Shown here: piece by piece, positions 18,701-61,069 of the stretch | Layout of the letters: each line of letters starts with the position of its first letter | Numbering within the stretch: the stretch's first letter is position 1 | Assembly: GCA_044892525.1 (NCBI GenBank) | Contig: CM097885.1 | Location: 23,126,001-23,190,000 of the forward strand | Origin: Schmidtea polychroa | Taxonomy: Eukaryota | Direction: 5' to 3' | DNA length: 64,000 nt | Notes under the pieces: generated by a model | Database searches by the model: none | What the model saw: the letters and a program-made list of their open reading frames with translations, nothing else | Told to the model about the DNA's origin: nothing | Program-made: the position numbers and the translations under genes

Positions 18701-19885
18701 CTTTAGCATCATGTATGATTATAAAGCAATAAAATCATGAACAAATAAATAAATATAAAAATTCTTACCCGGCAACCATATCATCTGGCATCCAAGTATG
18801 ATGTCTCCTCCTTCTCAAGCTGCGTACTCAAACATCACTTTTATAACCATCTCATCAATTATGCTCATATTCTCCAAAGATCTAAAAAATCTTCGACATT
18901 GCCTAGATACATTCTACAAAATTTCCTCGTGACATATCTCTGCTGACCACATCATACTCGGATCTTCCAGAGGATACAGCTGCCGGCACCATGAAGAAAA
19001 GATAATTGTCATTTAAATAAAATTTATTCTATGAAATGAGTTTTGTTTTTCATTTTAACCATCAAATTAGCAAACATAAATAATTAATAAACCAAAATAA
19101 GTCACCATACCTAGAGCTTCGAAAAATTGGAACGAATTGAATTTAAAACTGATTTCGTAATAAACTGGTCACTAGTCGTTCGGTAACTTCCTGTAAATGT
19201 AAGTTCTGGAATCTCTGAAGTGATGCTTGTGAGTATGGTTCTGTGGAATATCTGTGATCGGTAATCTGTAATCTGTAATCGTGAAAAATCAAAGTGGGTT
19301 AACTTCTTCTTAAAAATTTTACCTGTAATCGTGAAAAATCAAAGTGGGTGTCTTCTAATTTTTCACGTTACATATATAGTATTTTTCGTCCAATCAGGAC
19401 GCAGCTTGTTTGTGATTTTCTATTTATTATTATTTTTTTATGTTTTTATTATAATGTATTGGGTTTTAATAACTTAACTTATTTCTTATTATTATTTTAT
19501 TTATTTTTCTTATTTTTCTCTTATTTTCTGTGGACTTATTGTTATTTGAATGTAATATAATTTTTTGTTTTAATTAAACTTAGAAATGGTTTTATTTTTT
19601 ATTTATTTCTTTAATTTTCCCGTTTATTTGTTTCACTTTTTTGTTCATTCTATTTTTATTTCATCCGCTGTGTGTCTTAAATCGTTTTATTTCTAAATCT
19701 TAGGGGTTTATTAGGTTTTATTTAATTAGGTTACTTATTCTTATTCTTTTGTTAGTATTTTACTGTTCCTTCCTATTTACTAATGAGATATGATGGTAAT
19801 TTATATATTTCTTATTTTCATTTATTTTTCGAGGTTTACCTTTCTATTCGTTCCAGTTTTCTCCGCTCTGAAATTTAGCCCAACA
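15762..19885 (-). repeat. 3' LTR of giant element (4,124 bp)
   Basis: Collinear with 33699-37822 at offset 17937; by eye ~7 substitutions and two 1-nt indels. Confidence 0.96.
16293..17053 (-). pseudogene. 3'-LTR copy of the LTR-encoded 253-aa ORF, split by a 1-nt deletion near 16889
   Basis: CTTACTCGC here versus CTTACTCCGC in the 5' LTR; this gives the two ORF-track pieces 16871-17053 and 16293-16826. The lesion may be real or a sequencing error. Confidence 0.85.
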
Positions 19886-20119: not shown

Positions 20120-20770
20120 TCACATCATCTCAAGGTTCGAAATGTTATTACTGCCCTGGTTGCTTTTCGGGGATCTTTGGGAGTTCTGGATTGGATGGAT
20201 GGTCGAAGTTGTTGCTGTGGAGAGCTGGATTATAACGGGTATTTGATTAGGAGACCGATTTTGTTGTATTTGGTCGAGTGGGTCTGGTTGTTGGAAATGT
20301 ACTGCTCGTTTATGTATGTTTCGGAATCGCAGGTTCTTTCTTTTGGGTTTCTCGGATAGTGGCTGGTTTCTTTTCCATGTTCGATAGATATCATACGCTT
20401 TCCAGGTGACTAGCGCGCATATGATAATGGTTTCACTGATTGTAGCGTAGAATAAAACTTGGCTTTCTTTTGCTTCTTTCTTTACGATGATTTCCTTCAA
20501 AGATTGTTGATTGGTTGATTCTTGTAGGAGGGTTTCAAGTTGTTCGATTCTTTGGGTTTGCAGGTTGAGTTGCTTTTGGATCTTTTGCCAGACGGCTTTG
20601 TTCCAGCATTGTTTCGGGATATTATTGGAGGGCTTTCTTTCATTTTTCAGTTTGATTAATGGGCTTTGCTGTTTCTCGGGATTCTCCCAGGGTGTTGGGA
20701 TTGACTGCCACATGGATATGCCGTTTATCGCTATCATTATTATTGCCACCAGGGTTGCTCCGAACCTCAT
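20120..20770 (-). CDS. Cargo ORF: 216-aa predicted type-I membrane protein
   Basis: Hydrophobic N-terminus MRFGATLVAIIMIAINGISMW, short coiled coil, second hydrophobic segment VLFYATISETIIICALVTW, then a basic/Q-rich tail. Confidence 0.7.
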   Translation of the reverse strand: MRFGATLVAIIMIAINGISMWQSIPTPWENPEKQQSPLIKLKNERKPSNNIPKQCWNKAVWQKIQKQLNLQTQRIEQLETLLQESTNQQSLKEIIVKKEAKESQVLFYATISETIIICALVTWKAYDIYRTWKRNQPLSEKPKRKNLRFRNIHKRAVHFQQPDPLDQIQQNRSPNQIPVIIQLSTATTSTIHPIQNSQRSPKSNQGSNNISNLEMM

Positions 20771-20824
20771 ACTACTATACGAAAGTTTTATTTACAATTA
20801 TTTACATTGATTATTCATCTTTAA

Positions 20825-21526
20825 TTATTGTCGGGTTTTCTTTTTACGGGTTTTCTCGGATGTTCTCATCACTTTCGTTTCCGCTTTTATTACTCGTTTT
20901 CTTAATTCGGGTAGTACTTCTAATTGTTTGTCTCTTTCGTCTAACTGTTGCTTTAGGGTTATTATTTTTCCTTTTAGTGCTTTTATTTCTTGCGTTGCTC
21001 TTTCGAGGTTTTTATGGTTCATTATTTGTAGAAAATCATTTCCTCTTTCCTCGTCTCCTCCGTCGTCTATTTCTTGGTATTTGTTGTTCATTCGTCTCAT
21101 TATCTCACATTCTTTCTGTTTTTGGTATAGTTGTAGTTGTAGCTCTTTCAGACTTTCTTGGTGTTTTCGGGCCTCGGTTTTCCAATAATCGCTAATCACT
21201 TCATCTGCCTTTCTACTGGCTCTTTCCTGCCATAATTCTCCCGCAATCTTCTCCCAATTTCTTCCTCGTTTTCTCTGCTCGTGGAGCCATTCGTTTTCTT
21301 CCTCCACTTCTTTCTTTACTTCTTCTAACAAGGTATATTCTTTTTTCAATACTTTGATCATTTTTCGATTGTCTCTCCATCTTTCTACTAATCTTTCGTT
21401 TTCTTGTCTCTCCTCTTGTAATTCTTCCTTGATAGTTTTCTTCCTTTCCACCTCCTCAACTTCAATTTCTCCCTCTTCTAGCTCGATTATGGATGTTATG
21501 ATGGGTTGTCCATTTTCAATATTCAT
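20825..21526 (-). CDS. Cargo ORF: 233-aa E/K-rich coiled-coil protein of unknown function
   Basis: Open frame with heptad-like composition; AG acceptor 3 nt before the ATG. Confidence 0.7.
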   Translation of the reverse strand: MNIENGQPIITSIIELEEGEIEVEEVERKKTIKEELQEERQENERLVERWRDNRKMIKVLKKEYTLLEEVKKEVEEENEWLHEQRKRGRNWEKIAGELWQERASRKADEVISDYWKTEARKHQESLKELQLQLYQKQKECEIMRRMNNKYQEIDDGGDEERGNDFLQIMNHKNLERATQEIKALKGKIITLKQQLDERDKQLEVLPELRKRVIKAETKVMRTSEKTRKKKTRQ

Positions 21527-21716
21527 TTTCTATAATATATACATAATTAAAAATTGCGCTACAGTGCGGCTTATACTTATACATTTATATGTAATTTTAT
21601 ATAATCAGGGTTACAGTCCCGTCAATACTTTTATCGTACTATTAATTTTTTTGTTGGGATATAGGTCCCGATTTTTTTTTTTTTTTTTTTTATATTTTTA
21701 TCTCTTCCATTTATCT

Positions 21717-22738
21717 TCATACGAAGGTTTCTTCCTGGCCTACGTATCCTTCATCGCTTTCTACTGATGTTTGTAGTTGGAGTGCGATGGGATCGAATGG
21801 AATGTAGTACCGGGGAATCTGCGCTCTAAGTTCTTGGATTTCGTCTCTTAGCGCTCTTGACACGTTGAGTTCCTCGTCCAACAGGTATGTTAGATACCTG
21901 GTTTCGTCATCCCTTACTTCGATCTGTTTTTCTAATTCTTCCGCTTTTTCGCCGTTTTCCCATTTCTTGATTTCTTTTTCGAGGTTCTTGATGTTTTCAT
22001 CATACATCTTCCTCTCGTTTTCTAATTTCTTGTTCTTACCGGCTAGCACGATATTCCTTTGTTCTAGTGCCCCCTTATAGCCGTTATTGTCTCTTTCAAG
22101 GTCTGCCACCTTATTTACGAGCTCGACGATTCTACCTGACTGTTGCAGGGTCATCTCTTCCATGGCGGTATTCTCCTGTTCTTTCATAGACAGTTTCATG
22201 GCCAGATGCCTTTCAAATTCCATGGCCTTGGTCTGCCAGGTTTGACTACTTTCCTTCTTAGCTCTTCTCTCTGATCAAGATTTTCTTCCCATTTCCCTTG
22301 TTCACTTTCGTATTCCAATCTCTGCGGCAATTCTCTCATTTCTTTTTTAATTTCCCGATGTTGTCTTTTCCACTTTCTGGCTTCTGCTACTAATTGACGG
22401 GTCTTCCTTTCCTCCTTCTGTTTTTCTATTTCCCGCTTCTTATTCTCATCAGTTAGTCTTTTCCTTGACTCCTGTACCAGTTGCTTCAGGTAATGCCCGT
22501 GTGCCTCTTGCCTGGTACTTTCTAATGCTGACCATTTAGCGGCTCTTTTGCAGGCCTCGGCCTCCGCTCGTAAATTCTGCACTAACCACTGGAACTGGTG
22601 GTTTTCCCATTCTCTCGCTTCTTCGAGGTAATTTCGTGTTTGATTTGATAATTGCGCCATCACTTTGGCCCATCTTTCTCTGTGTATTCTACTGATTTTT
22701 ATTTCGTTGTTTGGGGCTTCCGTTTGATCTTGAGTCAT
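21717..22738 (-). CDS. Cargo coiled-coil ORF(s): 180 aa (22196-22738) and 168 aa (21717-22223), probably one ~340-aa protein with a 1-nt frameshift
   Basis: The two ORFs overlap, and the downstream frame is open upstream of its ATG (ERRAKKESSQTWQTKAMEFERH). Confidence 0.6.
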
Positions 22739-22958: not shown

Positions 22959-24347
22959 CTACTCTGTTCTACTTTTCCCATCTCGCCTCACTGTTATCTT
23001 TATGTATATGGTATCGTTTCTCGTCATATCTTCTACTTTTCGCTGCAAGATGAAATTCGGTGCTCCGGTTGCTGGTCCTTCTTCTTCCAATGGCCTTTGA
23101 TAACATACGAGGTTTCCCGCTGTATGGAAACTCTGTTCGTGTATACTTTGGTGGTTCATCATTGCGAGGTCTATTTTTGCTTTAAACGGCCATTCTATTA
23201 TTTCGTCGTACAACCCTTTGCATATCAAGAAGAATACTGAAAAATGTGTTCCGTATGCACTTCCATCCCCGTTGGGATATGCTTTCATTTTCATTTTATA
23301 CCCGTTTTTCCATGAATAGAATGCTGGACTTAGTAATGTTGTATCCTTTCCATTTTTGGCTCTCTGCATTTTCTCTTGTACTCCCGTTATTTTCCATATG
23401 TATGGAGCCGTTGGTATTAATTCGTTGAGGTTCATTTCGCTTACTTTTTGATATAGTTCTTTCACCATATTGTTGCTAGTTTCTACTAGATCTGTCTGTA
23501 TCTTTGTATTTGTTCTTGCCCCTACGAATGCTTCTTTCTCCTGTAGTAATTCCTTTACTAACGCTTTTAGCTAGATTTTTTCTCTTTCTAAGTTCTCGGT
23601 TTTCCTTTCGTTTTCTTGTAATACCGTTGAACACATTTCTGTGTGTGTTGCTACGTTCTCTGCTAAATGTTGGGGTAATTCTCCTCGGTGTAATTGTTTT
23701 TGACATCCCCATTTTCCTAATACACACGTTATCTTTTTCTTTCGACATTCTCTTAGATGTTGAGCGAGTTTTATTACTCCGGATTCATCGCATTCGTTAG
23801 GACATTCGCCTCTGAACTCTGTGCATACTTTTTCCTCTTGTACGTTATGGTGTTGACTAGTCAGTTTTCTTCGGGTATCGGTTTCTCCGCAGTATTCACA
23901 TTTTTCCAGCCTTTCTACGCATCGACTTTGATGTTCTTCCTCTTCCTTTGCTTTAATCTCTTCCTGGCAACGTTCGCATTGACTGATTTTATACTCACAC
24001 TTCTCTATATGTTGCCTCACTTCCCATATCACTCCTCGCCCATTGCACGGGGTGTTTTTACATCCTAAATTTGCATTTAACATATCTTTCACTGCCGCTT
24101 TGTCCTCGTTTGTATCTCCCAAACTGGTTATCATGGTTTCTTTACATACTGGGCACCATTGTGGTCCCTTCTTTATTATCTCCTCTATGCATCCCTTGCA
24201 CATCCTACATCCACATCTGGTTTGGTGAGGTTCTTTTAATAAGCTCTTGCATATTCCACACGTTACATGGTTGTGTATTCGAATTGTGGTGGATTTTCTG
24301 ACTTGTTCGACAATCTCTTTGAACTCTTCTCGTTGTCGCTTATCCAT
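22959..24347 (-). CDS. TRAF: Intronless TRAF-family protein (RING, TRAF zinc fingers, coiled coil, MATH/TRAF-C) with one in-frame TAG at 23571-23573
   Basis: RING CGICKSLLKEPHQTRCGHR-like (CGCRMCKGC..CPVC), repeated C-x-C/H-x-C fingers (HIEKCEY, HQSRCVERLEKCEYC, HLRECRKKKITCVLGKWGC), and MATH motifs YIWKI, SPAFYS...GYKM...YPNGDG...THFSVFF...G.YD..IEWPF. 23570-23469 is 34 open codons linking the two ORFs in frame. Confidence 0.92.
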
Positions 24348-31540: not shown

Positions 31541-31550
31541 ACTCACCTGG
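31541..31550 (-). promoter_or_regulatory. Consensus 5' splice donor CAG|GTGAGT upstream of pol (candidate major splice donor)
   Basis: The plus strand reads ACTCACCTGG; this is a perfect donor consensus in a non-coding leader. Its function is inferred. Confidence 0.45.
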
Positions 31551-31809
31551 CGTCCCCTTTAATCAATTAATTATTTCTTCTTTATTCATTATCTAATCAC
31601 ACTTATTCTTTATTTTCAATTATCTTAATTCCTTTTCCTTTTCTGTTTCTCCGTTTCCACTAAAAGAATTTTACTATCATCTTCTACCAGCTCGTTTAAT
31701 CCTCTCTAAATTCGAATTCTCATATCCAAATTCAATTCATTTCTAACTAGCTTAATATCCTATCTCATTATCAACTTAGATACTATCCAATCATTTTCTA
31801 GGCCTTTAC

Positions 31810-32208
31810 GACTGGCTGGCACTTTTCACCAGCTCAGTTTCAAATTCCTTGACCGGCTGGACTTCTCGACAGCTCGGCCTTAATATCTCCGACTGGCTGG
31901 ACTTTTCACAGCTCAGTTTCAAATTCCTTGACCGGCTGGATTCTCGACAGCTCGGCCTTAATATCTCCGACTGGCTGGACTTTTCACAGCTCAGTTTCAA
32001 ATTCCTTGACCGGCTGGACTTCTCGACAGCTCGGCCTTAATATCTCCGACTGGCTGGACTTTTCACAGCTCAGTTTCAAATTCCTTGACCGGCTGGACTT
32101 CTCGACAGCTCGGCCTTAATATCTCCGACTGGCTGGACTTTTCACAGCTCAGTTTCAAATCCCTTGACCGGCTGGACTTCTCGACAGCTCGGTCTTAATA
32201 TCTCCGAT
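31810..32208. repeat. Tandem array of a 79-bp unit (~5 copies; each unit has two related ~40-bp halves)
   Basis: GCTCAGTTTC recurs at 31832, 31911, 31989, 32068 and 32147. Confidence 0.93.
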
Positions 32209-32788
32209 TCAGCATGCTTCCACTTCTATCCTATCTTTATTCTAGACTGTCATTTTCCTACTTTTACTTTTTATTTGTCGACCTAATCTGTGCCGCTTGA
32301 GAGTGTTTCCCCTTTCCCCCCTTGCTCAAAACGCAAAACGATCGCATTGATCCATTTCCACATTAGTATGGTGATCAGCCATACCGCAGAAACTTTTCAA
32401 TATTCGCGATGGTACCTCGCCTTACATCTCTTCCTCGGGGTGATCGGTTATCCCTTCCCAAACAGTTTTTCAAATATCGTACCTCCCGAAGGTGGCTCGG
32501 TTTATTCCCCCTTTAATCTTATGGTGGGACTAGTTCCACTTTATATAATCAAATTGAATTTTTAAATACCCTTTCTTCATGGTGAAAATTATGATATAAC
32601 AAATCGAATTATAGCTACGCAAAAATGAAATAAACACACAAAATGATTTATTGATTATTCAGCTCATACTACATGCGATATATGATACTCTTATTAAAAC
32701 ATTAACCAATCAAATCAAAAAAAATTAAAATGTTTAGTCTTAATTGTTCAATTCAGCCAAATTCTCCTCACCGAGTGACGATCGCGTG

Positions 32789-33253
32789 TTAGTGGAAGTA
32801 TACCGTGTGTGTCTCTTTTATCACACACGCACATAAAGAACAATGGGTTAAGTTGGCGACGCATTCATCACAATGGCTTAGGTGTCCGCAAGGTAATATC
32901 AACATTCTGCCAGGTCGTGTCTTACAAATATTACACCCTAACCCTTCAATCAAGACTCGTATCCTCTTAGATAAAGTTTTTACTTGCTCGCGTATTCTTA
33001 TGTATTCGATATTCAAGACGGGATCGTCAAGACGTTGCTGAAGCCATTGGTAATGAATAGACAAGTCGGTGTTGGTATTTGTTGATCCTAATCTGTCGGT
33101 TAGAAAGTTTTGTTTGGATATCAGCGGTGCGTTGTGGCGTTGTTGCTCTAAGAGTTCTATTTGTTTCAGTTTCTCTTTTAATGTCTTTATTGAGTCGTTT
33201 TCTATATCGATGAATCTGCTTAGCTGTTGTAGATGTTGCCTAGCTTCTGACAT
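32789..33253 (-). CDS. Cargo ORF: 154-aa coiled coil plus C-terminal IAP/MDM2/MYLIP-type C3HC4 RING (probable E3 ligase)
   Basis: CNICKTRPGRMLILPCGHLSHCDECVANLTHCSLCACVIKETHTVY matches the IAP-class RING spacing, with the RING at the extreme C-terminus. No BIR seen. Confidence 0.85.
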   Translation of the reverse strand: MSEARQHLQQLSRFIDIENDSIKTLKEKLKQIELLEQQRHNAPLISKQNFLTDRLGSTNTNTDLSIHYQWLQQRLDDPVLNIEYIRIREQVKTLSKRIRVLIEGLGCNICKTRPGRMLILPCGHLSHCDECVANLTHCSLCACVIKETHTVYFH

Positions 33254-33673
33254 ATCTGAATAAATGTATGGTTATTATTTGTTCCTACTGGTATTATCAA
33301 TAATACTATTATGTTTGCATTTAATAATCGTTTATCTTTCATTTGTTATCGTTTCTAGCTTTTGTATTTTATTTAATCTTTAACAATCCCTCCGTCGTAT
33401 TTTCGACTTTAATCATTTAATTAAAATTAAAACAAAAATAACTAATTCCCGTTTTCTTTTCTCATCATACTCAATCATGTTCCTTCATACTCCTTTAGAC
33501 TCGTTTTCATTCATGCATACTCTATTCAAACACATATAGTTCGTATTGTCCTTCTGTCACACGATAAAATCAAATCAATTTAGTTGGGTCCCGATTCTAT
33601 TTATCATAATCCATTAAATCACTCAACCAACACATCATGACACAATAATAGGCCATCAAAACAAATCAAATTC

Positions 33674-33691
33674 ATCCCGGCTGAGCCCCCA
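33674..33691 (-). promoter_or_regulatory. Primer-binding site, tRNA-Pro-like (TGGGGGCTCAGCCGGGAT)
   Basis: 18 nt resembling the complement of tRNA-Pro 3' ends, 7 nt inside the 5' LTR boundary. Confidence 0.75.
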
Positions 33692-34229
33692 AAAATCATG
33701 TTGGCGTATGTGGGGAAAAGAAAATATACATGCATATCATACACATCAAGCATCATGATTCCGCTCAGGCCATTCCCGCACACACTCCAGATGATCATTC
33801 ACAAATTCCCACGTATGAGCCCGTGGTGATGTTCCACGTTGGTGCTGCTCACACGGGTTGGAAAAAGTCAGCAGGTGAGCCCCTGTCTTAGGACTACTCC
33901 TAACCCTTTCTCGGTTCGGGTTCCATGGCGCCCTAGAAGGTCTTACCCGGTTCTTCGCACAAAAATTCAGTCCGACCCTGGTCCAAGGGGACGACATTTA
34001 AGCCTCTACTACGCTTTCAGGATCCTGCTCTTCCGCAATTCAACCATAGCAATGCATACATTCAATTAGCACAATCAAAGAAAATAGAACAGTTGTATTA
34101 TATCGGAACATTAAGATACATCCATCATTATGTAAATAAATATAAAACAGTAAAGATTAGGCACAAGATAACGTCAATTTTTCAAGTTTATTCGTAATAG
34201 CAGAGAATCGAGACCCGAGAAGAAATTTA

Positions 34230-34991
34230 CTACGAGAATGCTTCTCCTTCTGCAAGCATCTCGTCGATGTCAACCGGCAATCGTTGGTTGGAAAGGTACT
34301 TAATGCCTTCTGCCGGAACGATGCGAAAGATTTCCTTTGTGGGAATTGAGTGACTAGACGATATCTCTTTTATGGTGGATTTGGCTGCAGATAGTGACGC
34401 TTCGAGTGCAGCCATTGCATCTCGGCGTTTCTGATTTTTCTCGGCTCGGGTTGGCCGTTTTCGTTTGCGAGATGGCGGAGGGTTGTCCGTGTTCGAGGTG
34501 ACGACGGGAGCCACTAGGATTGGAGCTAAGATGGGATCAGTAGGTCCACCCACCAAAGGTTGATAACCAGATAATGTTGGAGCCGGGACGGGTGGTAGAT
34601 ATGAACCATGTCCTTGGCAGTTTGTGGTGGTCGATTGAGATACCTGATGATGAAGTGGGAAGACGTTGGTATTCTCCAAGACGGGGAATTCCCGTACCCG
34701 CTTGGCCAGTTCCGCCTCCGTATAAACCTTGTGGAGGCCTTCGGACTGGGCTTTAAAAGTCAATCGTTGATTTCGGCTCTCCTCTAGGAGGCTATCTCTG
34801 CGGTGTTCTAGTCGGAGAATCTTACTCCGCTCCTCCTTAATTTGTGGCGGGGAGAACCACGTACCCTCATAGAGATCGATTCTCTTCTTCAATGCCCCGA
34901 TGTATAGGTGAAGTTGTGCTATGTCGGCATTTTTATCCGCACACGAGAAGCACGGTCGAAGTTCCTTAGTGTTGCTGGAAGATGTCGTCAT
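34230..34991 (-). CDS. LTR-encoded 253-aa protein (CxxC plus coiled coil, Pro-rich linker, basic RKRKRPTRAEKNQKRR segment)
   Basis: Intact ORF; homologues at 47747-48508 and 43159-~43913, with mainly synonymous divergence. Confidence 0.85.
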   Translation of the reverse strand: MTTSSSNTKELRPCFSCADKNADIAQLHLYIGALKKRIDLYEGTWFSPPQIKEERSKILRLEHRRDSLLEESRNQRLTFKAQSEGLHKVYTEAELAKRVREFPVLENTNVFPLHHQVSQSTTTNCQGHGSYLPPVPAPTLSGYQPLVGGPTDPILAPILVAPVVTSNTDNPPPSRKRKRPTRAEKNQKRRDAMAALEASLSAAKSTIKEISSSHSIPTKEIFRIVPAEGIKYLSNQRLPVDIDEMLAEGEAFS

Positions 34992-37299
34992 TCTAGAAAA
35001 TCAATCAGTTTTATATCGAGTCAGGACATTTATTTTCGAATGACACAGTCGAGTTTAGAACATAAGCTGGCCATCTTATCTATCATCTCACCCAATGACA
35101 ACCCACAGATCTCATCATCCGTTCTCATTCACTGGCATTCCACTACAAACATTCAAATTCACTCATACAATCGTTTACGAAAAAGGGAACGGGAATTTGA
35201 TTAAGAAACGCCTCTGATCTAGGTCCACTTCCTTATCATATCGTTATTCTCTAGTTTTCTCATTACTGTCTCAGCTTTCTATCGATGTAATTATACCTAA
35301 TGACTTTAAAACGAGACCAAAATCCCCGACAACTTATGGCCAATTATATGTTAAACTACTCTAGGGGAATTATAATAAGAAAATTTAGTTAGAAAACTGA
35401 ATATTAAATTAAAATTTCCAGTGATTTAAATTATACGCGGAATTCGTCGTCATGGAGACATTTATTTAGTTGTACATTCTGATTGGATAGCTAGAGGTGT
35501 CAATCTTCCGATCGCAATTATAATTGTGCATTAGTTGTTATTTTTCGAGCAACTGTCTGTACTATTGGAAAAGATTATTGCTTGTCTAGTAAATTGGAGA
35601 AAAATCTAATTCCTCACCCTAGTCTGTTGAAAATTTATTTCTGAAGAAAATCCATGTATTCACGTGATCATTACATCACCAGCATTTCCTACCAAGCAGT
35701 AGATTCATTTGTACACCGCATTACATGAGAGTGACAGAAGTGTGTGTATGTACTATGACAGAATAGAACGGATTACATAATCGGCTTTCCGACAAGAAGC
35801 AGTAGACAAATTGCGAATCCGATTTATCAGCGCAAGCAACCGACGATGTAGCAGAGTGCGGAGTAAGTTGACTTTGTTATCAAATTTCATTTCATGATGT
35901 TGACTCAGGATAATGATTATTAGCTGGTTCACTCGACTATTCCTACTCACAGAGCGATATAGCATCAATTTAAGTTAGCATTATCAGATAACCCTGTTGG
36001 CTGACGGTAAACTGGCTATTGCAAATCAATTGAATACGGTTATCGTTGACGATAATTTCCCTCGACCTCATAGTAAGTATTCCTAAATTTTTATCGTACC
36101 GTGTTTACCTACCCGTCAAAGAGAGATTATTCCCTGCTGGTGTCTGTGGCTCAAGGACAGAAATTCGACATTCAAGAGTACATCGATGGTGGATGTAACT
36201 GCTAACAACCGGGTGACAGATTTAAAAGAAAAGAAAATCGAATTCCGCAGAAGGTGAAGACATTATACAATATCTCTGACTGATTCGTGAAATGGTGATG
36301 GTAATGCCTCCGAAAAATGCTCTAACGACGACCTGACTGTCATGAGGATCCTCTTTGCCTGCGTGGATTACCATTAGTTCAATGTCAATATCAAATGTCT
36401 ATCTCTGTCTAATTCTTGGCCATTTCTAAAATTCGTTGACACAAATTTTTTGGAATTTTCGCCATAAGAATGGAACTAATCGCAGAACGATCGCACTCGG
36501 TGGAAATAATTTTACTCCGCAAACGCATCTCAACTACTAAGTCTCTTCACCCCTCATGACACACCCAAGAAGGCATTCATTTCTGCCGCCATTCTTGCAC
36601 CGTCATGAGGGACCAATCGACTCATTCAACTTCAACATCTTTAGCATCATGTATGATTATAAAGCAATAAAATCATGAACAAATAAATAAATATAAAAAT
36701 TCTTACCCGGCAACCATATCATCTGGCATCCAAGTATGATGTCTCCCCTTCTCAAGCTGCGTACTCAATCATCACTTTTATAACCATCTCATCAATTATG
36801 CTCATATTCTCCAAAGATCTAAAAAATCTTCGACATTGCCTAGATACATTCTACAAAATTTCCTCGTGACATATCTCTGCTGACCACATCATACTCGGAT
36901 CTTCCAGAGGATACAGCTGCCGGCACCATGAAGAAAAGATAATTGTCATTTAAATAAAATTTATTCTATGAAATGAGTTTTGTTTTTCATTTTAACCATC
37001 AAATTAGCAAACATAAATAATTAATAAACCAAAATAAGTCACCATACCTAGAGCTTCGAAAAATTGGAACGAATTGAATTTAAAACTGATTTCGTAATAA
37101 ACTGGTCACTAGTCGTTCGGTAACTTCCTGTAAATGTAAGTTCTGGAATCTCTGAAGTGATGCTTGTGAGTATGGTTCTGTGGAATATCTGTGATCGGTA
37201 ATCTGTAATCTGTAATCGTGAAAAATCAAAGTGGGTTAACTTCTTCTTAAAAATTTTACCTGTAATCGTGAAAAATCAAAGTGGGTGTCTTCTAATTTT

Positions 37300-37335
37300 T
37301 CACGTTACATATATAGTATTTTTCGTCCAATCAGG
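37300..37335 (-). promoter_or_regulatory. LTR promoter: inverted CCAAT (CTGATTGG) plus TATA box ~500 nt inside the LTR
   Basis: The same ATTGG...TATATA arrangement occurs in the solo LTRs at ~45355-45379 and ~42106-42143. Confidence 0.6.
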
Positions 37336-40300
37336 ACGCAGCTTGTTTGTGATTTTCTATTTATTATTATTTTTTTATGTTTTTATTATAATGTATTGGG
37401 TTTTAATAACTTAACTTATTTCTTATTATTATTTTATTTATTTTTCTTATTTTTCTCTTATTTTCTGTGGACTTATTGTTATTTGAATGTAATATAATTT
37501 TTTGTTTTAATTAAACTTAGAAATGGTTTTATTTTTTATTTATTTCTTTAATTTTCCCGTTTATTTGTTTCACTTTTTTGTTCATTCTATTTTTATTTCA
37601 TCCGCTGTGTGTCTTAAATCGTTTTATTTCTAAATCTTAGGGGTTTATTAGGTTTTATTTAATTAGGTTACTTATTCTTATTCTTTTGTTAGTATTTTAC
37701 TGTTCCTTCCTATTTACTAATGAGATATGATGGTAATTTATATATTTCTTATTTTCATTTATTTTTCGAGGTTTACCTTTCTATTCGTTCCAGTTTTCTC
37801 CGCTCTGAAATTTAACCCAACACAAGTATGAGTCCGAAATTTTAAGTAACATTAAATAAATTTACAGAAAAGAAATTTCTGTACAAAATTCTTACGAAAT
37901 TCCAAACATATAAAACTTTCGATGTCTGAGAAAATGTCTGAGAAAACGAATAAAACCCTTATAGGTGAGATAAAGGGATTCTTCAAAAATCCAAAAAAAC
38001 AAGTTATTATACGAATCCGTAATCAAATAAATAAATTGAAAAACAAAATTTTGAATAAATTGAATAGCACAATAATTTCAATGTTGAAGTCTCTAAACTT
38101 GAGATTCCCAACGTTGCTGTGATAACTATATATAAGACAAAGTCTGGTTATCAAATATTTATTTAAAATTCAAATTTCTTACCAATACAATCCTTTTGAG
38201 ATTTGATTTCACTGGAAAATAATCGTGGGTGTTTAATATTATGTTAGTGCGTTATGTTGAGTACTACGGTTAAACTTTACTGTCGTGTCTTGTTAAAGAT
38301 TAAAAACTAATAAGGTTTTTAAATTATCTAGTGTTTCCAGGCCAAGGAAAACTAAAACCAAAACAACATAATAATAAAACATATTAAAACAACACAACAA
38401 CATAATAATTTTCTTTTTGAATATAGTTATATTTTTTCAGACTTTCTCCATATTCGTAAATATTTCGTGATGTACTATTTGTTATTGTGTAAGTTTTAAT
38501 TTAATATTCTTTTAACATTAACCTTCCTAATGTTTTCCTTTTCAAACCTTTTAATGATTTTAACTTAACCTGCTCTGAATCATTTAAAAATCTCTGAATT
38601 ATATAACAAATTCAAAAAAAGCTTATTATCATTTAACATTCTCAGTGTCATGGCAGTCATTTTTGACTGACAGTGCTTTGCCACTTGCACCACAACAGGT
38701 CTTTTACAGGTAAAAATGTAATTTTTTTGTTGTCAGACACATTTATCTACCAATACTCTGTGTCAGGTCGATTTGTCTAACAGAGACTTTTTAAAAAATA
38801 ATTTTGTGAGGTCAATGTGTCTGACAATAACATGTTAAAAAGGCTGTTTTTCTGTGGCACTGTATTAACAGTAACCATAGGCTCGTATAGATCTTTTTGC
38901 ATGAACTTAAATTGTAAAAAGGCTTTATTGGAGCAAAATTTTAAAATGAAATATACAGTTTGATGTTCATATAAATTAATAAAATTAAAAATTATTTCAC
39001 TATTTTTTGATGCATTGAAATTTAAAAAATAAAACTATTAAATATGCAATTAATATTATTAAAATTTAATCTCACACTAATAAACGAATAACCATTTCTT
39101 GTTTGATGTTGTTTAAACCGTCAATTTATTTAAATTTCCTTTTAAAATATTTTCTCAAACATGTCCTCCAACATTAATTCATGTAATTATTTGATTACTA
39201 ATAAGTAAAGTCTAGAAACGAAGAAAAAACAATATAAAGTAAAGTTTGATTATATTCAATTTTTTCTAAAAATTAAATTTAAGTTGACAAATGAATTCTG
39301 GCATTTATTAGAATATAGAAACTTGAATTAAAAACAGATTATTTCGTAGAAAATTTAGAGATGAGAAATTTGTAAGGTATATTAATATTTTAGTTTTGAT
39401 ACAAATATTGTAAGTTATTAATTCTTTGATAATGATAATTTGATTTATTATGAATACTCGGCTTCACATGTATATAACGTATATAGTTATTATTCATAAA
39501 TTTATTGTGATTAATGCTTTAATATTTACATTTTAATTTATGTTTTGATCTTGATATAATTAGGTTATTATCAGATTTTGAAGTTAAAGGAAAATGTACT
39601 AGCTGAACGTTGTGAGTTTTGGCTAATTGTATCGATTAGATCGTTACACCTATAACTGTTAGAATTCTATATAGTTAATAGATTAGAAAATTAGGCACAC
39701 TGGCGACCTTATGAAGTTGATAATTTCCCTACTACTATTATGCCTAAATATGGTCAGTTTATCCAACAAGATATTTTGTCCCCATATGGGTAATGGTCAC
39801 AAATTTACTGCTCGAAAAAATCTCTTGCCCCATTATTAACAAATTATTATTCCAACGAAACATATGTAGTTGCATGCTGACTGCAACATACATTTTCAAT
39901 ATGAAGACTTAATTATACCAAATAATCTTCAATGAAACTATAACGAGTTTTCAGTAATAAAATTTTGTGTACTATAAAAATCAACACCAAAATAAATGTT
40001 TTTTATATATTGATATCATATATTAGCCGCTTAATAAAACATCGTCGATATTGATGTTACCACAATCCATATTTACATTATTATTGTGATTGTTATCATC
40101 GGAATCATCTAAGTCCGGACTCATTCCGTCAAAAAGTGGACCAACTTCAAATACCTGGTCAATATCTGGAACATTGAGTCCTAAATAATAACCATATGCC
40201 AGACTGGTATTAGGCCCCACCCATAGCCGCTTGTCACTAAGCTATGAACGCTGGCCTACCACAAGCAAGCTATCCTTGTAATAGTGCCCAAATGTCAAAA

Positions 40301-41777: not shown

Positions 41778-44431
41778 TGTTGGGCTGAATCGAAAGCTTA
41801 AACGCAGAAAATAGGGAAAGTCAGAGAAATAAGATATTAAGATAAAATAAACAATTTAAAAAATAAAAAACAGAATAAGAAATAAGAAAAACAATAATTA
41901 AAAAGTAAGAATTAAAACAAAATAATAAAATAAGAAATTAAAATAGGAAAATAGATTAACAAACAAAATGATGAAAAATTTAATAAATATAGAGGAAGTT
42001 AAAGGAATAAATAAAAAATAATATAATAAAAATAAAAAAAGTAAGAAGAAATAATCGAAAATAGGAAAAAGAAATTATATTAATTAAAATAAGCGGTACT
42101 CAACTCTGATTGGTCCGCAGGCATGCAAAAAATACTATATAAACCGACATGAAATTCATTATATTCACTGTTTAACTTCAAACTGCTATAGGTAACGTTT
42201 AAAATTATTCACTGTTTAACTTCAAACTGCTATAGAACCTATTCGAAGGACACTATTCAATAGAAAATCACCGATATTCAAAGGAACAACAGGATCAAGG
42301 ACTAATAGATAAACTTTACCGGAACTCAAATCATAACTTTCGATTCAGCTCACGATCAATTTTCGAACCATAGTAAGAGAGATTTATTGGTTTTTAAGAT
42401 TTGTTAAGTAATTATGAAGTATTACCTAATGATTAAACAATTAATTTAACATTAAAATGTCTCTTCTTCATTTGATTTCCGTTTAAGTAATGTCTGAATG
42501 AAATTACATTTTGTAGATTTGGATTTAATTGGCATCAATAAATGATTTTCATTTTAGAAATTTTATGTTTTATATTTTTATGTTTTGTGATTCATGATAT
42601 GCACAAGTATGATATGACTTTAAAATCTTCGAGTAACGTGGAGTTGAGGAACTTCCTGTCATGGTATGAGGTGCCTTCGGGAGCTCAGCCGGTGGACATG
42701 GGGTTCTTCAATCACGCAGCTGTATTGGGCCGAAATGTGGGGGCTTCCTCACGGGTCCTATCGCTGAAGAATTAATAAGAGTATTTTAAATAATAACGAA
42801 AAAATGTTTTAAATATTAATTGAAGGTATTTTAAACAACACTCCAATGTAATATTTAATAATTAGGCATGTTTTGAAAACCAACAATTAAAGATAAATTT
42901 AGTAATTCATAAATCCTCTTAATTTTGAAGCTAGTAATTTATTTGCATTCGTCAATGCGGTGATATAGGTAGTAGAATTGGTATTGTCTTGGTAAATGAT
43001 TAGCCTAGTAGTAGTAATAAAATCGTTCTGGGAGGAGTTTTCTTTTCCCGTCTGTCCTAATCGTCTTGTTGCCAGATATGCGATGGTGAACAAATACCGT
43101 ACTCAATCAACGATTTCTTAAATATAGTTATCTCAGTTTCTTTTTATAGCCATCTAACATGCTACCAACCGCCAAATCCGCTTTACGCCCATGGTTCTCC
43201 TGCGCGGACAAAAATGCGATTATAAGGAATCTGCAGGCCCAGATCGGGCGCTACAAAAAGAAAATAGATGAGTTGGATGGCACCTGGTTCAGACACGCTC
43301 AGATGAAGGAGACCCAAAAAAAGCTGTATCGCAGCGAACACTGTCGTGACGCTCTCATCTCGGAGAGTCGTTCACAAAGGAGCTTGATTAAAGAGCAGTC
43401 CGAGGCACTGCATAAAGTCTACCTACAGGCAGTCACCACGCGAAAGATCGTCCAGATCCCCATTAAAGAGGCCGATAATATCTTTCCGCCTCATCATAAC
43501 ACCTCAAATCCATCTCCGCCGCTCAAGAGGTCCTGTCGAGATTGCGTCGAAACAGAACTGTCGCCCAAGTGACCAGATGTCATCATCACGTGTACCAGCA
43601 AGGCATCAACTCCTAATACATCCACATCAACCACGCTTCAGCAAGCTGAAATTTTGGACAAACCTAAACGCAAACAACTATCTCGTGCAGAGCGTAAAAA
43701 GAGACAGCGCGAACGTACATTGAGCAGACAGAATAAGGCCTCAGCGGAAGATCCGACCCCTGAAGTACCAGTTCCGCGGTGATAGACTTGACCATCGGGG
43801 CCCCCGCGCGAATTATATCAGCCGCCGGTGTAGCCTGGGAGGAGAACGCCTCCGAGTTCTTTGATTTAGAAGAGTTGTTACTCGCCACGGAATGGAAGGA
43901 ATGAGGCCCCACGGTGAAGCGTTCTCGAAAATTCTATGAATTCATGTCATCCTGCATTGTCTCTTCTTTTCCTATGTAAATACTATGTCGTATTCTGTGT
44001 GGTTATTAAGACAATAAATTTCTATTTCTCTTTGGTATTCTTATATGTCTTTTGTAATGAATTAGTATAGATATTTAAATGTATAGAAGTACTCATTTTG
44101 GGGGAGTATCAGTCAAGTTTGCATTTGGTGTAAGACCCAGCGAGAGATCGGATCGCGTTGCTAGACGTAAGTCCTTCTATCGGCAGTCAGGTGTGGGAAG
44201 TCGAGGCCTCAGTAAGGAGTAGTTTAAAGGCAGAAGCTCACCTGCTTACTGGCGTCTCGCCTGCATAGTGCAGTACCAACGTGAAGCAATTCACGGGCAC
44301 TAATGTTGGAATGCAGATCGTGTGAGGTCCTACTCTGAGTTGACGAGGTGAGAGTTAGTAGATGTAGTCGGACAATCATCCCTTATGGTAGAGCCTTGAA
44401 TTAGCATAGTCAACCGAGTGGTACCCCAGCA
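41778..44431 (+). mobile_element. Solo LTR (2,654 bp) of a diverged relative of the giant element, inserted in the Tc1 transposase
   Basis: TGTTGGG...CCCAGCA termini with 4-bp TSD ATCG (41774-41777, 44432-44435); shares promoter layout, ORF and 3' motifs with the giant LTRs. Confidence 0.88.
43159..43913 (+). pseudogene. Diverged, frameshifted homologue of the LTR-encoded ORF
   Basis: LRPWFSCADKNAII...DELDGTWF...RDALISESRSQ...QSEALHKVY; after a shift, KPKRKQLSRAERKKRQR aligns to the basic segment. The 3' end is approximate. Confidence 0.75.
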
Positions 44432-44855: not shown

Positions 44856-47800
44856 TGTTGGGCTAAATTTTGAAGTGGAGAGAAAAACTGGGTTAAATCG
44901 GGAAGCGAACCTCGAAAAATAAACGAAATATAATAAAAGATAAATTACCATCAAACCTCAATAGTAAATAAGGAAACAATAAAATACCCATAAAAAGAAA
45001 TAAGAATAAGTAATAAATAAATAAAACCCCTAAGAATTAGAAAGAAAACAAAAGAGAAAGGATTTAAAGCACCCAGCGAGTAAAGTAAAAATAGAATAAG
45101 CGAAAAAGTGAGAAAAAATAAACGAGAAATTAAAGCAATAAATAAAAATATCTTTAAGCCTAATTAAAACAGAAAAATCATATGGCAATAAAGTAGCCAT
45201 AAAACAGCAAGAAAAAATAGGAGAAAAATGATAAAAATAAGAAAAATAAATAAAATAATAATAAGAAATAAGTTAAGTTATTAAAAGCTAATATATTATA
45301 ATAAAAACATAAAATAATAATAAATATTAAAAAATTACAACCTAACTGAGTCCTGATTGGACGAAAAATAGTATATAAGCAACGCGAAAATAAGAAGAAT
45401 ACCACTTTTTAATCCACGATTGCAGGTAAAATTTTTGAGTTATGAGATACCACTTTTTAATCCACGATTGCAGAACTTGACTTACGAATTATTACGGAGG
45501 ACTAATTTCAAAGACGACTAAATCGATTTTAGGAAGAAACTCAGTAAACTTATTCAAGAAAACCTTCACGTTAACCGATTAAATCCAGTTATTCCAAAAC
45601 TCGAAAGTATGTTAAGTTATTTATGGTTTAGTTTTATGATGAATATGATTGAATTTAATAGATATTTATGATTGACTTTAGTAAATTTTTGTAAATAACA
45701 AGGATAATTTCATTCAATAAATTTATTTGAAAACAGAAACTGCCCTTCTTCATGGTGCCGACGACTGTACCCTCTGGTGATTTCAAGTATGATGCCAATG
45801 GAGGAAGTAGCCACGAGGAATTTTCATAGCATGCCTCTAGGAGATGTTGCGAAGACATTGGAACTGGAAAAATGATAATAATCAATGAGATGTTCGCTAA
45901 TGCTCAGACTGAATATATGATTGGAAAAGGGAAAGCATCATACTTGGAGCCCAGATGATATGGTCGCCGGGTAATTTGATTTATTTATTTTGATCATTAT
46001 TTATTCTGTTATTATTATGATTTATATATGAATTTTTAATTGTTGAATGTGAAGGAGTTGATTGGTCCCTCATGACGGTGCAAGAATGGCGGCAGCAATG
46101 AATGCCTTCTTGGGTGAGTCATGAGGGGTGATGAGGCTCGGTAGACTAAAAATCCCGTTGAGGAGTAAAATTTTCCTTCACCCAGCGCGATCGTTAGGAG
46201 GATATTCTATCATTTTGTTCAGTTATATCGAGATTTCTGATATTCGTATAAGTAGCTTGAACTCCCAACAGGGGTTAATCCGGATTTAGATCGACATGAG
46301 TGTTTAGATAGATCCAATAAAACTTCACATAGATTGAGGAAAATCAGCCTGTCGATCAGAGCAGCTAAGAAAGAATCTTGTCGACCACCGTTTGCGATTA
46401 AATCCAACGGTTTTTCTGCAGCGTAATAAATTCACGAGGTATCGTCTGATTTGGATCGCCAGAACGTTAGCGATGAAATCCGTAGGGAATGTACTTTTAG
46501 GCTTGATTGTTGACGCTCGGGTTACTGATAAGCATCGTTTTCTGCAAATAAAGCATGAGAATTATCAGGATACTTAAGATAGAGATGGGAGAAACCACTG
46601 ACAGGAATATCGGCTACTCGTTGATTGACTCGATGAATCGCCCGTGGAGTTATCTGATAATTGTTAAAGGGACTACAGTCGGATTGTAGCAAATCAAATT
46701 GAATGACCGACGAAATCAGATAGCGCTGATAATAAGTTCATTTCCACGATGATTTGTCTAGTTGGCGCGTGGGTAGACATTGTCTTGAGTTGGCCGTAGG
46801 ATAAGTAAAATAGATTGAAAATTCCAGCTCATTCATTACTCACCGAATTATCACATACTGTCTAAGGCTGATGCTCGTGGAATTTTTAGTAGCAATTCAA
46901 CTTTATTGCGTCTCGTAACCACACACACTTGCGCACTCCAGTAGGATAGCAACGCACTCTAGATAGTGGAATTTTCTGTGACGTCATAATTATATCATAG
47001 CCTATCCGAAATTTCCTGAGATAGTAGGATGGTGTGTATGGACAACAGCACGGATCGTTTTTACCGTGATTTGATACGACATCGAATTGTCTCGATTATT
47101 ATAGAGAAACAACAACATATGAAAGCACACGGCTAAGCTAATCTAACGGAACATACTAGCTCGTACAATAAAAATTAAACATAACATACGCACACCTGAG
47201 GTAGTGTCACCATGACAACGAAATAGCGCGTTATACAAATAATTAGTATTTTAATTCATGCTGCATTTTTGGGATAATCTAATTTTAAATTTTTTATCGT
47301 TGATTAGAGTTTATAACAGACAAGTAAAAACAAATGTCACCAAATCTAGACTCACCAGCACTTGTCTTACACAAATCGACGAACCACAATACTAAGAAGT
47401 GGATTTCTAATTTTTGTAGAATGATGAAATGAGATAGAAGTAACAATCAACAATCACCAAAAAGGGGAATAGATGGGACCCATCCAATCTGAAATTAACG
47501 TTTATTTTTATTAAATAAATTAATTCGGTACAATTTTCCCCGTTTTCTTTCCGTAATTCATATAAATTAGTTGGAGAAATGGTGTATGTTTGCCAATGAA
47601 TGATTGTGAATCGAAAGGGATGGTGAGAGCTGTGAGTTGTCAGTGTACGGAATGATTGATAGAACCCCAAACCTAAGTTCTAGAATCGACTATATCGTAC
47701 TAGTAGATGTTTTTCCAAGTAACCTAACAAAATATTGACCTTCTAGATGACTACATCGTCCAACAAAGCCAAAGAACTTCGCCCGTGTTTCTCTTGTGCC

Positions 47801-49056
47801 GACAAGAACGCGGACATCGCTCAATTGCACTTGTACATCGGGGCCCTCAAGAAGAGGATCGATCTTTACGACGGTACGTGGTTCTCCTCGCCACAAATGA
47901 AGGAGGAAAGGGCGAAGATCCTCAGATTAGAACACTGTAGGGACAGCCTACTGGAGGAGAGCCGCTGCCAAAGGCTCACAATCAAGGCCCAGTCAGAAGC
48001 CCTCCATAAAGTCTATACGGAGGCAGAACTAGCCAAGCGAGTGCGCGAATTTCCTGTCGCCGACAGAACAAACGTTTTCCCTCTCCACCATCAGTCTTCT
48101 ACAACTTCTACCACAACTTGTCAAGGGCACGGTTCACATCTACCGCCCATCTCAGCCCCAGTGCTGTCAGGATATCTACCAATGAAAGGTAATCCATCTG
48201 ACCCAATTCTGGCCCCGATTCTCGTGGCACCTACCGTCACCACGGATGTAGGGGAAAATCCGCCACCCCGCAAACGCAAACACCCGACCAAAGCCGAGAA
48301 GAATGAAAAATGGAGAAATGCAATAAAGGCGCTCGAAGCATCATTGTCTGCAGCGCAGTCAAAAATAACCGAAATATCATCCACCCATTCGATTCCCTCG
48401 AAGGAAGTTTTCCGTATTGTCCCGGCCAACGGCATCAGATTTATATCGGATTGTCGATTGCCTGTCGACATCGATGAGATAATCGCCGATGGGGAAAACT
48501 TTGCCTAGAAACGATCTACGTTCGACCTCGATTTCTCTTCGAGTTGTGATTCGACTTGCAAACGTTGATAATGCTGCATGTCCAAATTGATCGAATGTTG
48601 TTAAATCTATCATTGGTAACGATGTAATCGCTTTTGTGTTTTCGGTGTCAATATATTTTTCTGTTCGATTTTGTCTTGTGAAGTTTCCGTATGTTTGATT
48701 TTGAAATCAGAATAAACGAAATAATGCTGTGAGATGAATGTAATCAGGATGAAGGTCGTTCCCTTGGACCAGGATCGGACCGTAGCTGATGTATGAATAG
48801 GGGTAAGTCCTTCTAAGGCGCCATGGAACCTGAACCGCGAGTGGGTTATCAGTAGTCCTAAGGTAGGGGCTCACCTGTTAGCCAACTCCAACCCGTGTGG
48901 GCACTACCAACGTGGAACATCGCCACGGGCTCACATGAGGGAATATTCATGAAGTCAATTGGAGTATGATCGGGGAAGATCTAAGTTGAATACGCGTGAT
49001 GGTACAACTGATGATGAATTTTATTTATATTTTTTTTCTCCCCTCATACACCAACA
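44856..49056 (+). mobile_element. Solo LTR (4,201 bp) of a sister family of the giant element
   Basis: TGTTGGG...CCAACA termini with 4-bp TSD GCTG (44852-44855, 49057-49060); removing it restores the CsRn1 LTR as seen at 53720-53730. Confidence 0.93.
47747..48508 (+). CDS. Intact 253-aa LTR-encoded protein (sister-family copy)
   Basis: Same length and collinear with 34230-34991; preceded directly by CTAAC...TTCTAG. Confidence 0.85.
   Translation: MTTSSNKAKELRPCFSCADKNADIAQLHLYIGALKKRIDLYDGTWFSSPQMKEERAKILRLEHCRDSLLEESRCQRLTIKAQSEALHKVYTEAELAKRVREFPVADRTNVFPLHHQSSTTSTTTCQGHGSHLPPISAPVLSGYLPMKGNPSDPILAPILVAPTVTTDVGENPPPRKRKHPTKAEKNEKWRNAIKALEASLSAAQSKITEISSTHSIPSKEVFRIVPANGIRFISDCRLPVDIDEIIADGENFA

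Positions 49057-60991: not shown

Positions 60992-60995
<4 letters not shown>

Positions 60996-61064: not shown

Positions 61065-61069
<5 letters not shown>

Follow-up and report, generated by a model that had tools for sequence, protein, structure and literature searches.

Does the long terminal repeat (LTR) of a giant planarian retroelement carry a gene of its own, and, if it does, how would such a gene be expressed and what would its product do? This question is raised by a 64,000-nucleotide stretch of AT-rich DNA from Schmidtea polychroa (contig CM097885.1 of assembly GCA_044892525.1, positions 23,126,001 to 23,190,000; hereafter the window). The window contains a 22,061-nt element (15762-37822, minus strand), and an open reading frame (ORF) of 253 codons, ORF253, lies wholly inside the LTR of this element, which we call LTR family A. 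We observed that ORF253 is a genuine protein-coding accessory gene residing inside true LTRs, and that it was kept by purifying selection while three LTR families diverged.

A conserved gene inside the LTRs

We first established that the interval 33699-37822 is an LTR. It forms a direct repeat with 15762-19885; the two copies are 99.7% identical (7 mismatches and 4 gap openings) and have the termini TGTTGG..CCAACA, and the whole element is bracketed by a 4-bp target-site duplication, CAAG. This long repeat pair surrounds a minus-strand ORF with reverse transcriptase (RT), RNase H and integrase domains. Hence, it delimits a 22-kb Ty3/gypsy-type retroelement with 33699-37822 as its 5' LTR. A preliminary description of this DNA had proposed that this interval is an LTR with its own 253-aa ORF, and the direct repeat, the TG..CA ends, the duplication and the position of the ORF all bore this out. 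As ORF253 lies entirely within the repeat, there are two copies per element, in addition to those in solo LTRs.

Two other LTR families in the window also carry the ORF (Table 1). Family B is represented by a solo LTR. It landed in a smaller gypsy element and split one of its LTRs; the opposite LTR retains the uninterrupted empty site at 53697-53760 with a single GCTG. The smaller element itself (44789-44855 plus 49057-53919, minus strand) has ORF pieces for integrase and RT. Its two LTRs match at 98% over 197 nt, and the left one is split by the solo LTR. The third, more distant family C, which the preliminary description had also recognized by its common block order, was confirmed. There, the C-terminal half of the gene is unrecognizable, and the remainder shows 52-55% amino acid identity to the other families over ~110 residues. 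The cut end of LTR-C adjoins a 125-codon ORF (44330-44707, minus strand) resembling the C-terminal DDE part of a Tc1/mariner transposase. All four copies of ORF253 in the window occupy the same place in an LTR. Two of the four are broken, one by an indel in the 3' LTR, which might be an assembly error, and the other by the truncation of family C. The earlier proposal that every solo LTR seeds an expressible copy was therefore too strong.

Next, we measured the selection acting on ORF253. The copies from families A and B could be aligned without gaps and are 76% identical in protein sequence. Using the Nei-Gojobori method on the whole ORF, we obtained a proportion of synonymous differences (pS) of 0.73, which is saturated, and a proportion of non-synonymous differences (pN) of 0.15. 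The pN/pS ratio was 0.21 (bootstrap 0.16-0.26), or ~0.06 after Jukes-Cantor correction, and the differences at codon positions 1, 2 and 3 numbered 53, 27 and 139, respectively. As a control, we treated the two other frames as coding and obtained ratios above 1. Comparisons with family C gave pN/pS values of 0.41-0.44, again with saturated pS. In the global alignment of the LTRs, 3-periodicity was seen in the ORF block only (p = 3e-16). The preservation of 76% of the protein while the synonymous sites became saturated identifies ORF253 as a real gene. The strong purifying selection claimed earlier was thus upheld by a ratio far from 1, and the 32-aa stretch on which that claim was based is indeed identical between A and B, with 17 of its 32 codons differing.

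The selection acts on the element lineage and not on single insertions, because the copies decay once inserted, as seen from the frameshift in the 3' LTR and the truncation in family C. The intactness of the copy in solo LTR-B would be expected even without selection, since this insertion is recent: the LTRs of the element that hosts it differ by only 2%.

No other conserved block of the LTR is 3-periodic, and this rules out further coding exons. The LTR sequence flanking the ORF had been described as poorly alignable. This was true for much of it, but not for four non-coding blocks that are conserved between A and B (LTR positions 1-584, 872-1359, ~2628-2831 and 3838-4124), two of which peak at 86-88% identity, above the ORF itself. 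As synonymous sites are saturated, the unalignable parts are neutral sequence, and the four blocks that can still be aligned must be constrained cis-elements. Non-coding conservation within the putative intron is highest in the middle block, which reaches 86% identity between A and B over 100 nt. There, we found a 10-bp perfect inverted repeat with a 41-nt G+C-rich loop (36551-36611, minus strand; the equivalent in B is ~46067-46127, plus strand). The inverted repeat is a candidate for a structured element of the unspliced RNA or for a protein-binding palindrome. When this block was folded jointly for the three families, we saw no convincing covariation, as A and B hardly differ in it and the alignment of C is poor.

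We also noted that the codon usage of ORF253 is distinct. The frequencies at third codon positions are 0.50-0.60 for G+C and 0.20-0.29 for A in the three families, compared with 0.34-0.42 and 0.39-0.55, respectively, in the other genes of the same element (20120-33253, minus strand). As this difference persists despite the saturated synonymous sites, it is maintained rather than inherited.

Table 1. Coordinates of the LTRs, ORF253 copies, putative expression signals and other genes of the element (positions in the window)
Feature	Position	Strand	Remarks
5' LTR, family A, 4,124 nt	33699..37822	-	near-identical direct repeat, TG..CA ends, duplication
3' LTR, family A	15762..19885	-	other member of the direct-repeat pair
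Solo LTR, family B, 4,201 nt	44856..49056	+	4-bp duplication GCTG; sits in LTR of smaller gypsy element
LTR, family C, 3'-truncated	41778..44329 (end approximate)	+	followed by Tc1/mariner fragment
ORF253, 5' LTR, intact, 253 codons	34230..34991	-	LTR positions 2832-3593 in element orientation
ORF253 copy, 3' LTR	16293..17053	-	broken by one single-base indel, no substitutions
ORF253, solo LTR-B, intact	47747..48508	+	76% amino acid identity to A
ORF253, family C, open piece of 137 codons	43159..43572	+	first ~120 codons homologous
Promoter-like block, 5' LTR	37210..37337	-	CTGATTGG, TATA, 26-nt X1 ending AG/GTAA, 24-nt spacer, exact X2
Promoter-like block, 3' LTR	19273..19400	-	same block as 5' LTR
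Promoter-like block, LTR-B	45350..45473	+	inverted CCAAT, TATATAAG, X1/GTAA, X2
Promoter-like block, LTR-C	42106..42235	+	CTGATTGG, TATATAAA, 29-nt X1/GTAACG, exact X2
Putative acceptor region, 5' LTR	34992..35012	-	branch-point-like CTGAT, pyrimidine run, TAG; ends 1 nt before ATG
AATAAA, LTR-A	34187..34192	-	only one downstream of ORF; 38 nt past stop
AATAAA, LTR-B	48711..48716	+	only one downstream of ORF; sequence motif
AATAAA, LTR-C	44013..44018	+	only one downstream of ORF region; sequence motif
Conserved non-coding middle block	36464..36951	-	LTR 872-1359; peak 86% A vs B
G+C-rich conserved terminal LTR block	33699..33985	-	LTR 3838-4124, 287 nt; candidate U5/leader structure
Primer-binding-site-like sequence	33671..33691	-	starts TGG; 7 nt past LTR end
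RING-finger ORF, 154 aa	32789..33253	-	between 5' LTR and pol; zf-C3HC4_3
pol ORF, 2,036 aa	24962..31072	-	RT, RNase H, integrase (H2C2 + core), ankyrin repeats, C-terminal hydrophobic segment
TRAF-like region, at least 2 ORF pieces	22959..24347	-	RING + TRAF zinc finger; MATH domain
Four more ORFs before 3' LTR	20120..22738	-	rich in coiled coil; last with hydrophobic segments

Predicted expression signals and layout of the LTR

All three families display the same ordered signals: an inverted CCAAT box, a TATA box, a first-exon-like segment, a splice acceptor at the ATG of ORF253, and an AATAAA. Most of these had been listed in the preliminary description, and the three positions it gave for the AATAAA were found to be correct. 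The LTRs start with ~330-490 nt containing 53-57% A. The octamer CTGATTGG, an inverted CCAAT box, is present in every family and is followed 19-30 nt later by a TATA box of the form TATATATG, TATATAAG (LTR-B) or TATATAAA (LTR-C). The first-exon-like segment (X1), 26-29 nt long, begins 27-30 nt past the TATA, has an initiator-like CA inside and ends in AG/GTAA. Further downstream, a CTRAY-like branch point, pyrimidines and a TAG located 0-9 nt before the ATG are found in all three families. The joint chance of an AATAAA in all three post-ORF segments was ~0.007 in dinucleotide shuffles. Solo LTR-B retains all these signals together with an intact ORF.

The unspliced leader, from the predicted start to the ATG of ORF253, contains 65, 55 and 23 ATGs in the three families, and this number of upstream ATGs rules out translation of ORF253 from unspliced RNA. 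Joining the first-exon segment to the TAG acceptor gives a predicted 5' untranslated region of 27-38 nt with no ATG.

The best explanation of these data, in which we have about even confidence, is that ORF253 is an accessory gene expressed from a spliced mRNA initiated at the LTR promoter and that it encodes a nuclear nucleic-acid-binding regulator. The LTR's own promoter (an A-rich U3 of ~490 nt, the inverted CCAAT and the TATA) would direct a transcription start near LTR position 540. The 26-29-nt first exon would be spliced from the AG/GTAA donor to the TAG acceptor 0-9 nt before the ATG, thereby removing a 1-2.3-kb intron full of upstream ATGs, and the resulting mRNA of ~1 kb would be polyadenylated at the single AATAAA past the stop. 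Genomic RNA would be the unspliced read-through product from the same LTR, and a young solo LTR would still be able to make the protein. An LTR-initiated spliced mRNA, with the promoter upstream of ORF253, is the best reading of the motifs. A start at ~540 implies that R plus U5 measure ~3.6 kb. An R region of ~3.1 kb, or alternatively a short R with a huge U5, would depend on the polyadenylation site of the genomic RNA; each is one of several layouts that fit the sequence.

Several points weigh against this layout. The start site, junction and poly(A) calls are all based on sequence motifs, and the promoter and splice motifs are individually weak in DNA with 30-40% G+C. The position of the AATAAA is not conserved (38, 203 and ~90 nt past the stop or its equivalent), and look-ups of the exact proteins of ORF253 copies A and B found no record in the assembly collection. 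We know of no precedent for an R plus U5 of ~3.6 kb, and long LTRs usually owe their length to U3. Moreover, if RNA were polyadenylated in the 5' LTR, 3 kb downstream of the cap, this would compete with the synthesis of genomic RNA.

A more conventional, sag/nef-like layout is an alternative. Here, ORF253 would lie in a very long (3.7-kb) U3, and genomic transcription would be driven from a promoter within the final few hundred bases of the LTR. ORF253 would then be translated from a subgenomic mRNA whose leader donor has been joined to the ATG-proximal acceptor of the 3' LTR, and the CCAAT/TATA block at ~500 would be an enhancer or an unrelated promoter. The usual U3 origin of long LTRs favors such an arrangement. 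The last 287 nt of the LTR are conserved, G+C-rich and next to the primer-binding site, as R-U5 would be; the acceptor is directly at the ATG of ORF253; and, if R is short, the post-ORF AATAAA would be the normal poly(A) signal of the element. However, the 200-nt stretch that separates the ORF from the terminal block has no conserved motif of the TATA or initiator type and is unalignable between families. The sole conserved CCAAT/TATA pair is at ~500, followed at canonical spacing by the donor-terminated segment in three families. We consider this conventional layout rather unlikely.

Within the promoter-like block of every LTR family, X1 is followed 15-24 nt downstream by an exact second copy, X2, which lacks the GT. 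The repeats are at 37260-37285 and 37210-37235 (minus strand) in A, 45399-45425 and 45447-45473 (plus strand) in B, and 42163-42191 and 42207-42235 (plus strand) in C. Between families, the segment shows several changes from A to B and is an unrelated sequence in C, whereas the two copies within a family are identical. Such identity in the face of divergence indicates concerted evolution or tight constraint. X1 and X2 could possibly be twin start sites flanking the splice donor, the borders of a 44-50-nt mini-intron, or a 1.5-unit tandem repeat homogenized by template switching.

A more elaborate version of the LTR-initiated layout is possible, but we regard it as doubtful. In this version, the LTR would be a complete spliced and polyadenylated unit with its start at ~540 and an R (or R plus U5) of ~3-3.6 kb, every LTR would be a stand-alone gene for a trans-acting factor, and the duplication of X1 would provide twin start sites that sort spliceable mRNAs from unspliceable genomic RNA.

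Acceptor-like sequences are also found ahead of other genes of the element. A YAG occurs within 6 nt before the ATG in five of the eight internal ORFs, compared with a background of 21% among the element's ATGs (P = 0.013); with ORF253 included, this becomes six of nine (P = 0.004), both tests being post hoc. Internal ATGs preceded by a T-rich run and YAG are at 33253, 24347, 22738, 21526 and 20770 (minus strand). This pattern suggests that one leader donor, or a spliced leader, serves many acceptors. Planarians are known to use spliced leaders.

The ORF253 protein and its possible role

We next analyzed the protein. AlphaFold2 runs with 3 and 15 sequences gave the same picture: helices at residues 17-41, 48-101 and 182-213 with pLDDT above 90, the rest being disordered. 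The predicted layout is a helical hairpin (17-101), a Pro-rich disordered linker, a basic patch, a helix and an acidic, mostly disordered tail. Residues 173-192 contain 8-10 Lys/Arg out of 20. ORF253 has no membrane segment, as the maximum Kyte-Doolittle mean over 19 residues is 1.55 for A and 0.93 for B.

Searching all of 1.8 billion representative sequences with HMMER and a three-copy profile, we retrieved 12 distant homologues (E values of 7e-12 to 1e-3), all of them UniParc-only entries from one accession range. In the family alignment, the core has invariant W45, L68, E71, R73, R76 and Q82 and near-invariant T44, R60, Q75, P112 and H115; beyond it come the Pro-rich linker and a conserved Arg run, which in distant homologues reaches at least 10 Arg. 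The preliminary description had pictured a CxxC-coiled coil together with an Arg/Lys-rich segment. The CxxC part failed: the first Cys is a Trp in family C and both are missing from the 12 distant homologues, so that a zinc-binding CxxC is ruled out by the lack of conservation. A helical hairpin was predicted, and an Arg/Lys-rich patch is evident from the composition, which by itself is not specific.

We scanned 10 of the 12 homologues against Pfam. In nine of them, the ORF253-like segment is fused, at either end, to a truncated unrelated protein: a neurotransmitter symporter, glycine-cleavage P protein, CRAL-TRIO, subtilase, ribosomal L21, actin, ABC transporter, tyrosine phosphatase or hAT transposase. 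In the tenth, P0126, Pfam recognized no domain. These chimeric models indicate a dispersed repeat that gene predictors have merged into host genes.

The same observation bears on the proposal that ORF253 belongs to a host or domesticated gene family merely carried by the LTRs, its conservation reflecting a host function at solo LTR loci. The occurrence of homologues in gene models beside many unrelated host genes, and the intact copy in solo LTR-B, could be taken in its favor. However, fusion to truncated unrelated genes is the pattern of merged dispersed repeats, the copies in the window decay after insertion and always occupy the same place in an LTR, and LTR-B, being recently inserted, is expected to be intact without selection. 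We consider a host origin of the conservation highly improbable.

No family or fold could be named for ORF253, which weighs against any specific functional assignment: Pfam, searched up to E <= 10, PDB sequence profiles, and Foldseek runs against PDB and BFVD returned generic, chance-level coiled-coil matches only. Alignment with hhalign to the gag of a relative and to the accessory ORFs of the element and its relatives gave nothing (probability <= 3%). When ORF253 or a 5-sequence profile was used in word-indexed protein searches, the sole match was one already known. No relatives came up in IMG/VR or in JGI metagenomes, the latter searched with a conserved DNA word of 23 nt as well as with protein patterns. 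We also found no homologue by tblastn or HMM in five metagenome contigs, L001-L005, that hold the closest pol relatives of the element, these contigs being without complete LTR pairs. Thus, ORF253 constitutes an orphan protein family.

What might such a protein do? The hairpin (17-101) is likely an oligomerization module, and the Arg/Lys patch may be a nuclear localization signal or an RNA-binding segment. Together with the disordered linker and the apparently extensive splicing of the element, they point to a nuclear nucleic-acid-binding regulator, either an RNA export/processing adaptor or a transcriptional activator, rather than a structural protein. Of the roles considered, we regard this one as the most likely, although its probability, taken by itself, is low; a Rev/Rem-like role, suggested by the composition of the patch and the predicted hairpin, is a conjecture. 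Such a protein would regulate the RNA or the transcription of its own element, with a preference for the encoding copy. The strong selection on the lineage, despite the many copies that could complement in trans, suggests that the protein favors its encoding copy or that few lineages are active.

An alternative is that ORF253 is a structural or chaperone protein, a substitute for Gag or a coiled-coil RNA binder like LINE ORF1p that coats or packages its own RNA. This would explain both the cis-acting selection and the missing gag. Indeed, Pfam detected no gag, protease or env in the interior of the element, nor did tblastn with the gag, env and protease of L001/L002 in 31073-33698, although the LTRs are 99.7% identical. 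A coiled-coil-like hairpin and a basic patch are combined in one protein, and three distant homologues have PPPY, a budding signal in many viral structural proteins. On the other hand, neither a capsid-like fold nor a CCHC zinc knuckle was found, there was no Pfam match, and hhalign gave a probability of 0.3% against the L002 gag. PPxY is absent from A and B, and disorder is predicted for over half of the residues. In addition, a typical Gag is present in published full-length elements of the Burro type (PMC6431247), which this element resembles. We consider a structural role quite improbable. The element copy itself, with 99.7% identical LTRs but no detectable gag, protease or env, is most likely a non-autonomous (defective) derivative that moved recently.

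The element, its neighborhood and comparison with known systems

The interior of the element (19886-33698, minus strand) spans 13.8 kb. By Pfam, the domain order of pol is RVT_1 (119-277), RT_RNaseH (365-469), Integrase_H2C2 (577-635) and rve (651-749). Passenger domains, mostly downstream of pol, match zf-C3HC4 plus zf-TRAF_2, TRAF-mep_MATH (E = 4e-26) and Ank_2 (E = 1e-17). Scans of the window for tRNA and with Rfam gave no hits, so there is no tRNA gene within the window to match the primer-binding-site-like sequence. Five copies of a 78-79-nt tandem repeat (31830-32255) lie between the RING ORF and pol; the published figure of Burro likewise marks tandem repeats.

The passenger set of RING, coiled coil/Smc-like, MATH/TRAF and ankyrin domains has been described for the giant planarian elements Burro/GYPSM1, and a mononegavirus-type fusion glycoprotein has been called unique to Burro (PMC6431247). 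The closest pol relatives, on contigs L001-L005, are Burro-like with 48-50% identical pol, and the nearest have such a glycoprotein between gag and protease. From the passenger set and these relatives, the element resembles a Burro-like giant Ty3/gypsy LTR retroelement, all tested features being alike except for the gag, env and protease missing from this copy. By themselves, these features would make a planarian the probable host. It shares with Burro/GYPSM1 of Schmidtea and Dugesia/Girardia the very long element, long LTRs, RT-RNase H-integrase pol, passenger domains and AT-rich host genome. It differs in having no detectable gag, env or protease and in having its accessory domains downstream of pol. 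On two of the contigs, we noted gene calls matching bacterial-type Pfam families (luciferase-like, MnhB) or protein-primed DNA polymerase B (L002 17034-24564; L003 16872-18689), which may come from chimeric assemblies or adjoining Polinton-like elements.

Elsewhere in the window, ~15 copies of a 16-nt tandem repeat, alternating between the CCGGATAATCGACCAT and TCCGATAATCGACCAT types, occupy 456-704. A separate 415-codon integrase ORF (H2C2 plus core; 12385-13632, plus strand) belongs to another gypsy-type element. Beyond it, and close upstream of the main element's 3' LTR, are two inverted repeats of 153 nt (13890-14042 and 15246-15398) that are 77% complementary. A palindrome of two 65-nt arms, 75% complementary with zero spacer, is found at 60968-61097, 200 nt past an N run (60597-60768).

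LTR-encoded proteins are known from a handful of vertebrate retroviruses, in or overlapping U3. Like ORF253, Sag of mouse mammary tumor virus is a complete ORF inside the LTR and is kept by selection; it is expressed from spliced mRNAs. However, Sag is a type II membrane glycoprotein, whereas ORF253 has no membrane segment and no Sag match in Pfam (E <= 10) or in sequence; and the sag ORF is in U3, whereas ORF253 is downstream of the conserved promoter-like block and so may be in R or U5. Lentiviral Nef and spumaviral Bel/Bet are likewise products of accessory genes at the 3' end of the element that reach into the LTR, but these genes start in unique sequence and only overlap U3. ORF253 is wholly within the repeat, and we found no sequence or fold similarity to them. 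Thus, the LTR gene resembles the LTR-associated accessory genes of retroviruses and, from the negative sequence, fold and membrane tests, is outside the sag, nef and bel/bet families.

Rev, Rex, Rem and Rec are small basic proteins with a helical oligomerization surface and an Arg-rich patch, from elements with a leader donor and many acceptors. The basic patch and predicted helical hairpin of ORF253, and the putative donor and acceptors of its element, are reminiscent of them, but such a composition is not specific. No homology to them was detected by Pfam, PDB-sequence or Foldseek searches (E <= 0.001), and ORF253, with 253 aa and a long disordered linker, is larger than most of them. Ogre and other plant elements are alike in having multi-kb LTRs (2-6 kb), but their extra ORFs are in the internal region; we know of no report of conserved coding LTRs in this group.

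An LTR-borne ORF is not mentioned for Burro in the review PMC6431247, the original genome paper being outside the literature covered. A search of the literature on LTR-encoded ORFs in retrotransposons yielded nothing relevant, and we found no earlier report of a conserved gene wholly inside an invertebrate Ty3/gypsy-type LTR.

If the proposed expression scheme is true, the proportions of U3, R and U5 would be unprecedented, and giant planarian retroelements would run a program like that of complex retroviruses, with many acceptors served by a single leader donor and with a regulator of their own. If transcripts are indeed sorted by twin starts, an invertebrate Ty3/gypsy element would be regulated in the manner of a complex retrovirus. 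Solo LTRs, usually regarded as dead remnants, would instead be promoter-plus-gene cassettes, dispersed in their thousands. There would be consequences for the annotation of planarian genomes, where the family is already part of chimeric gene models with at least nine unrelated host genes, and also the way in which LTR-driven transcription in differentiating planarian cells is read.

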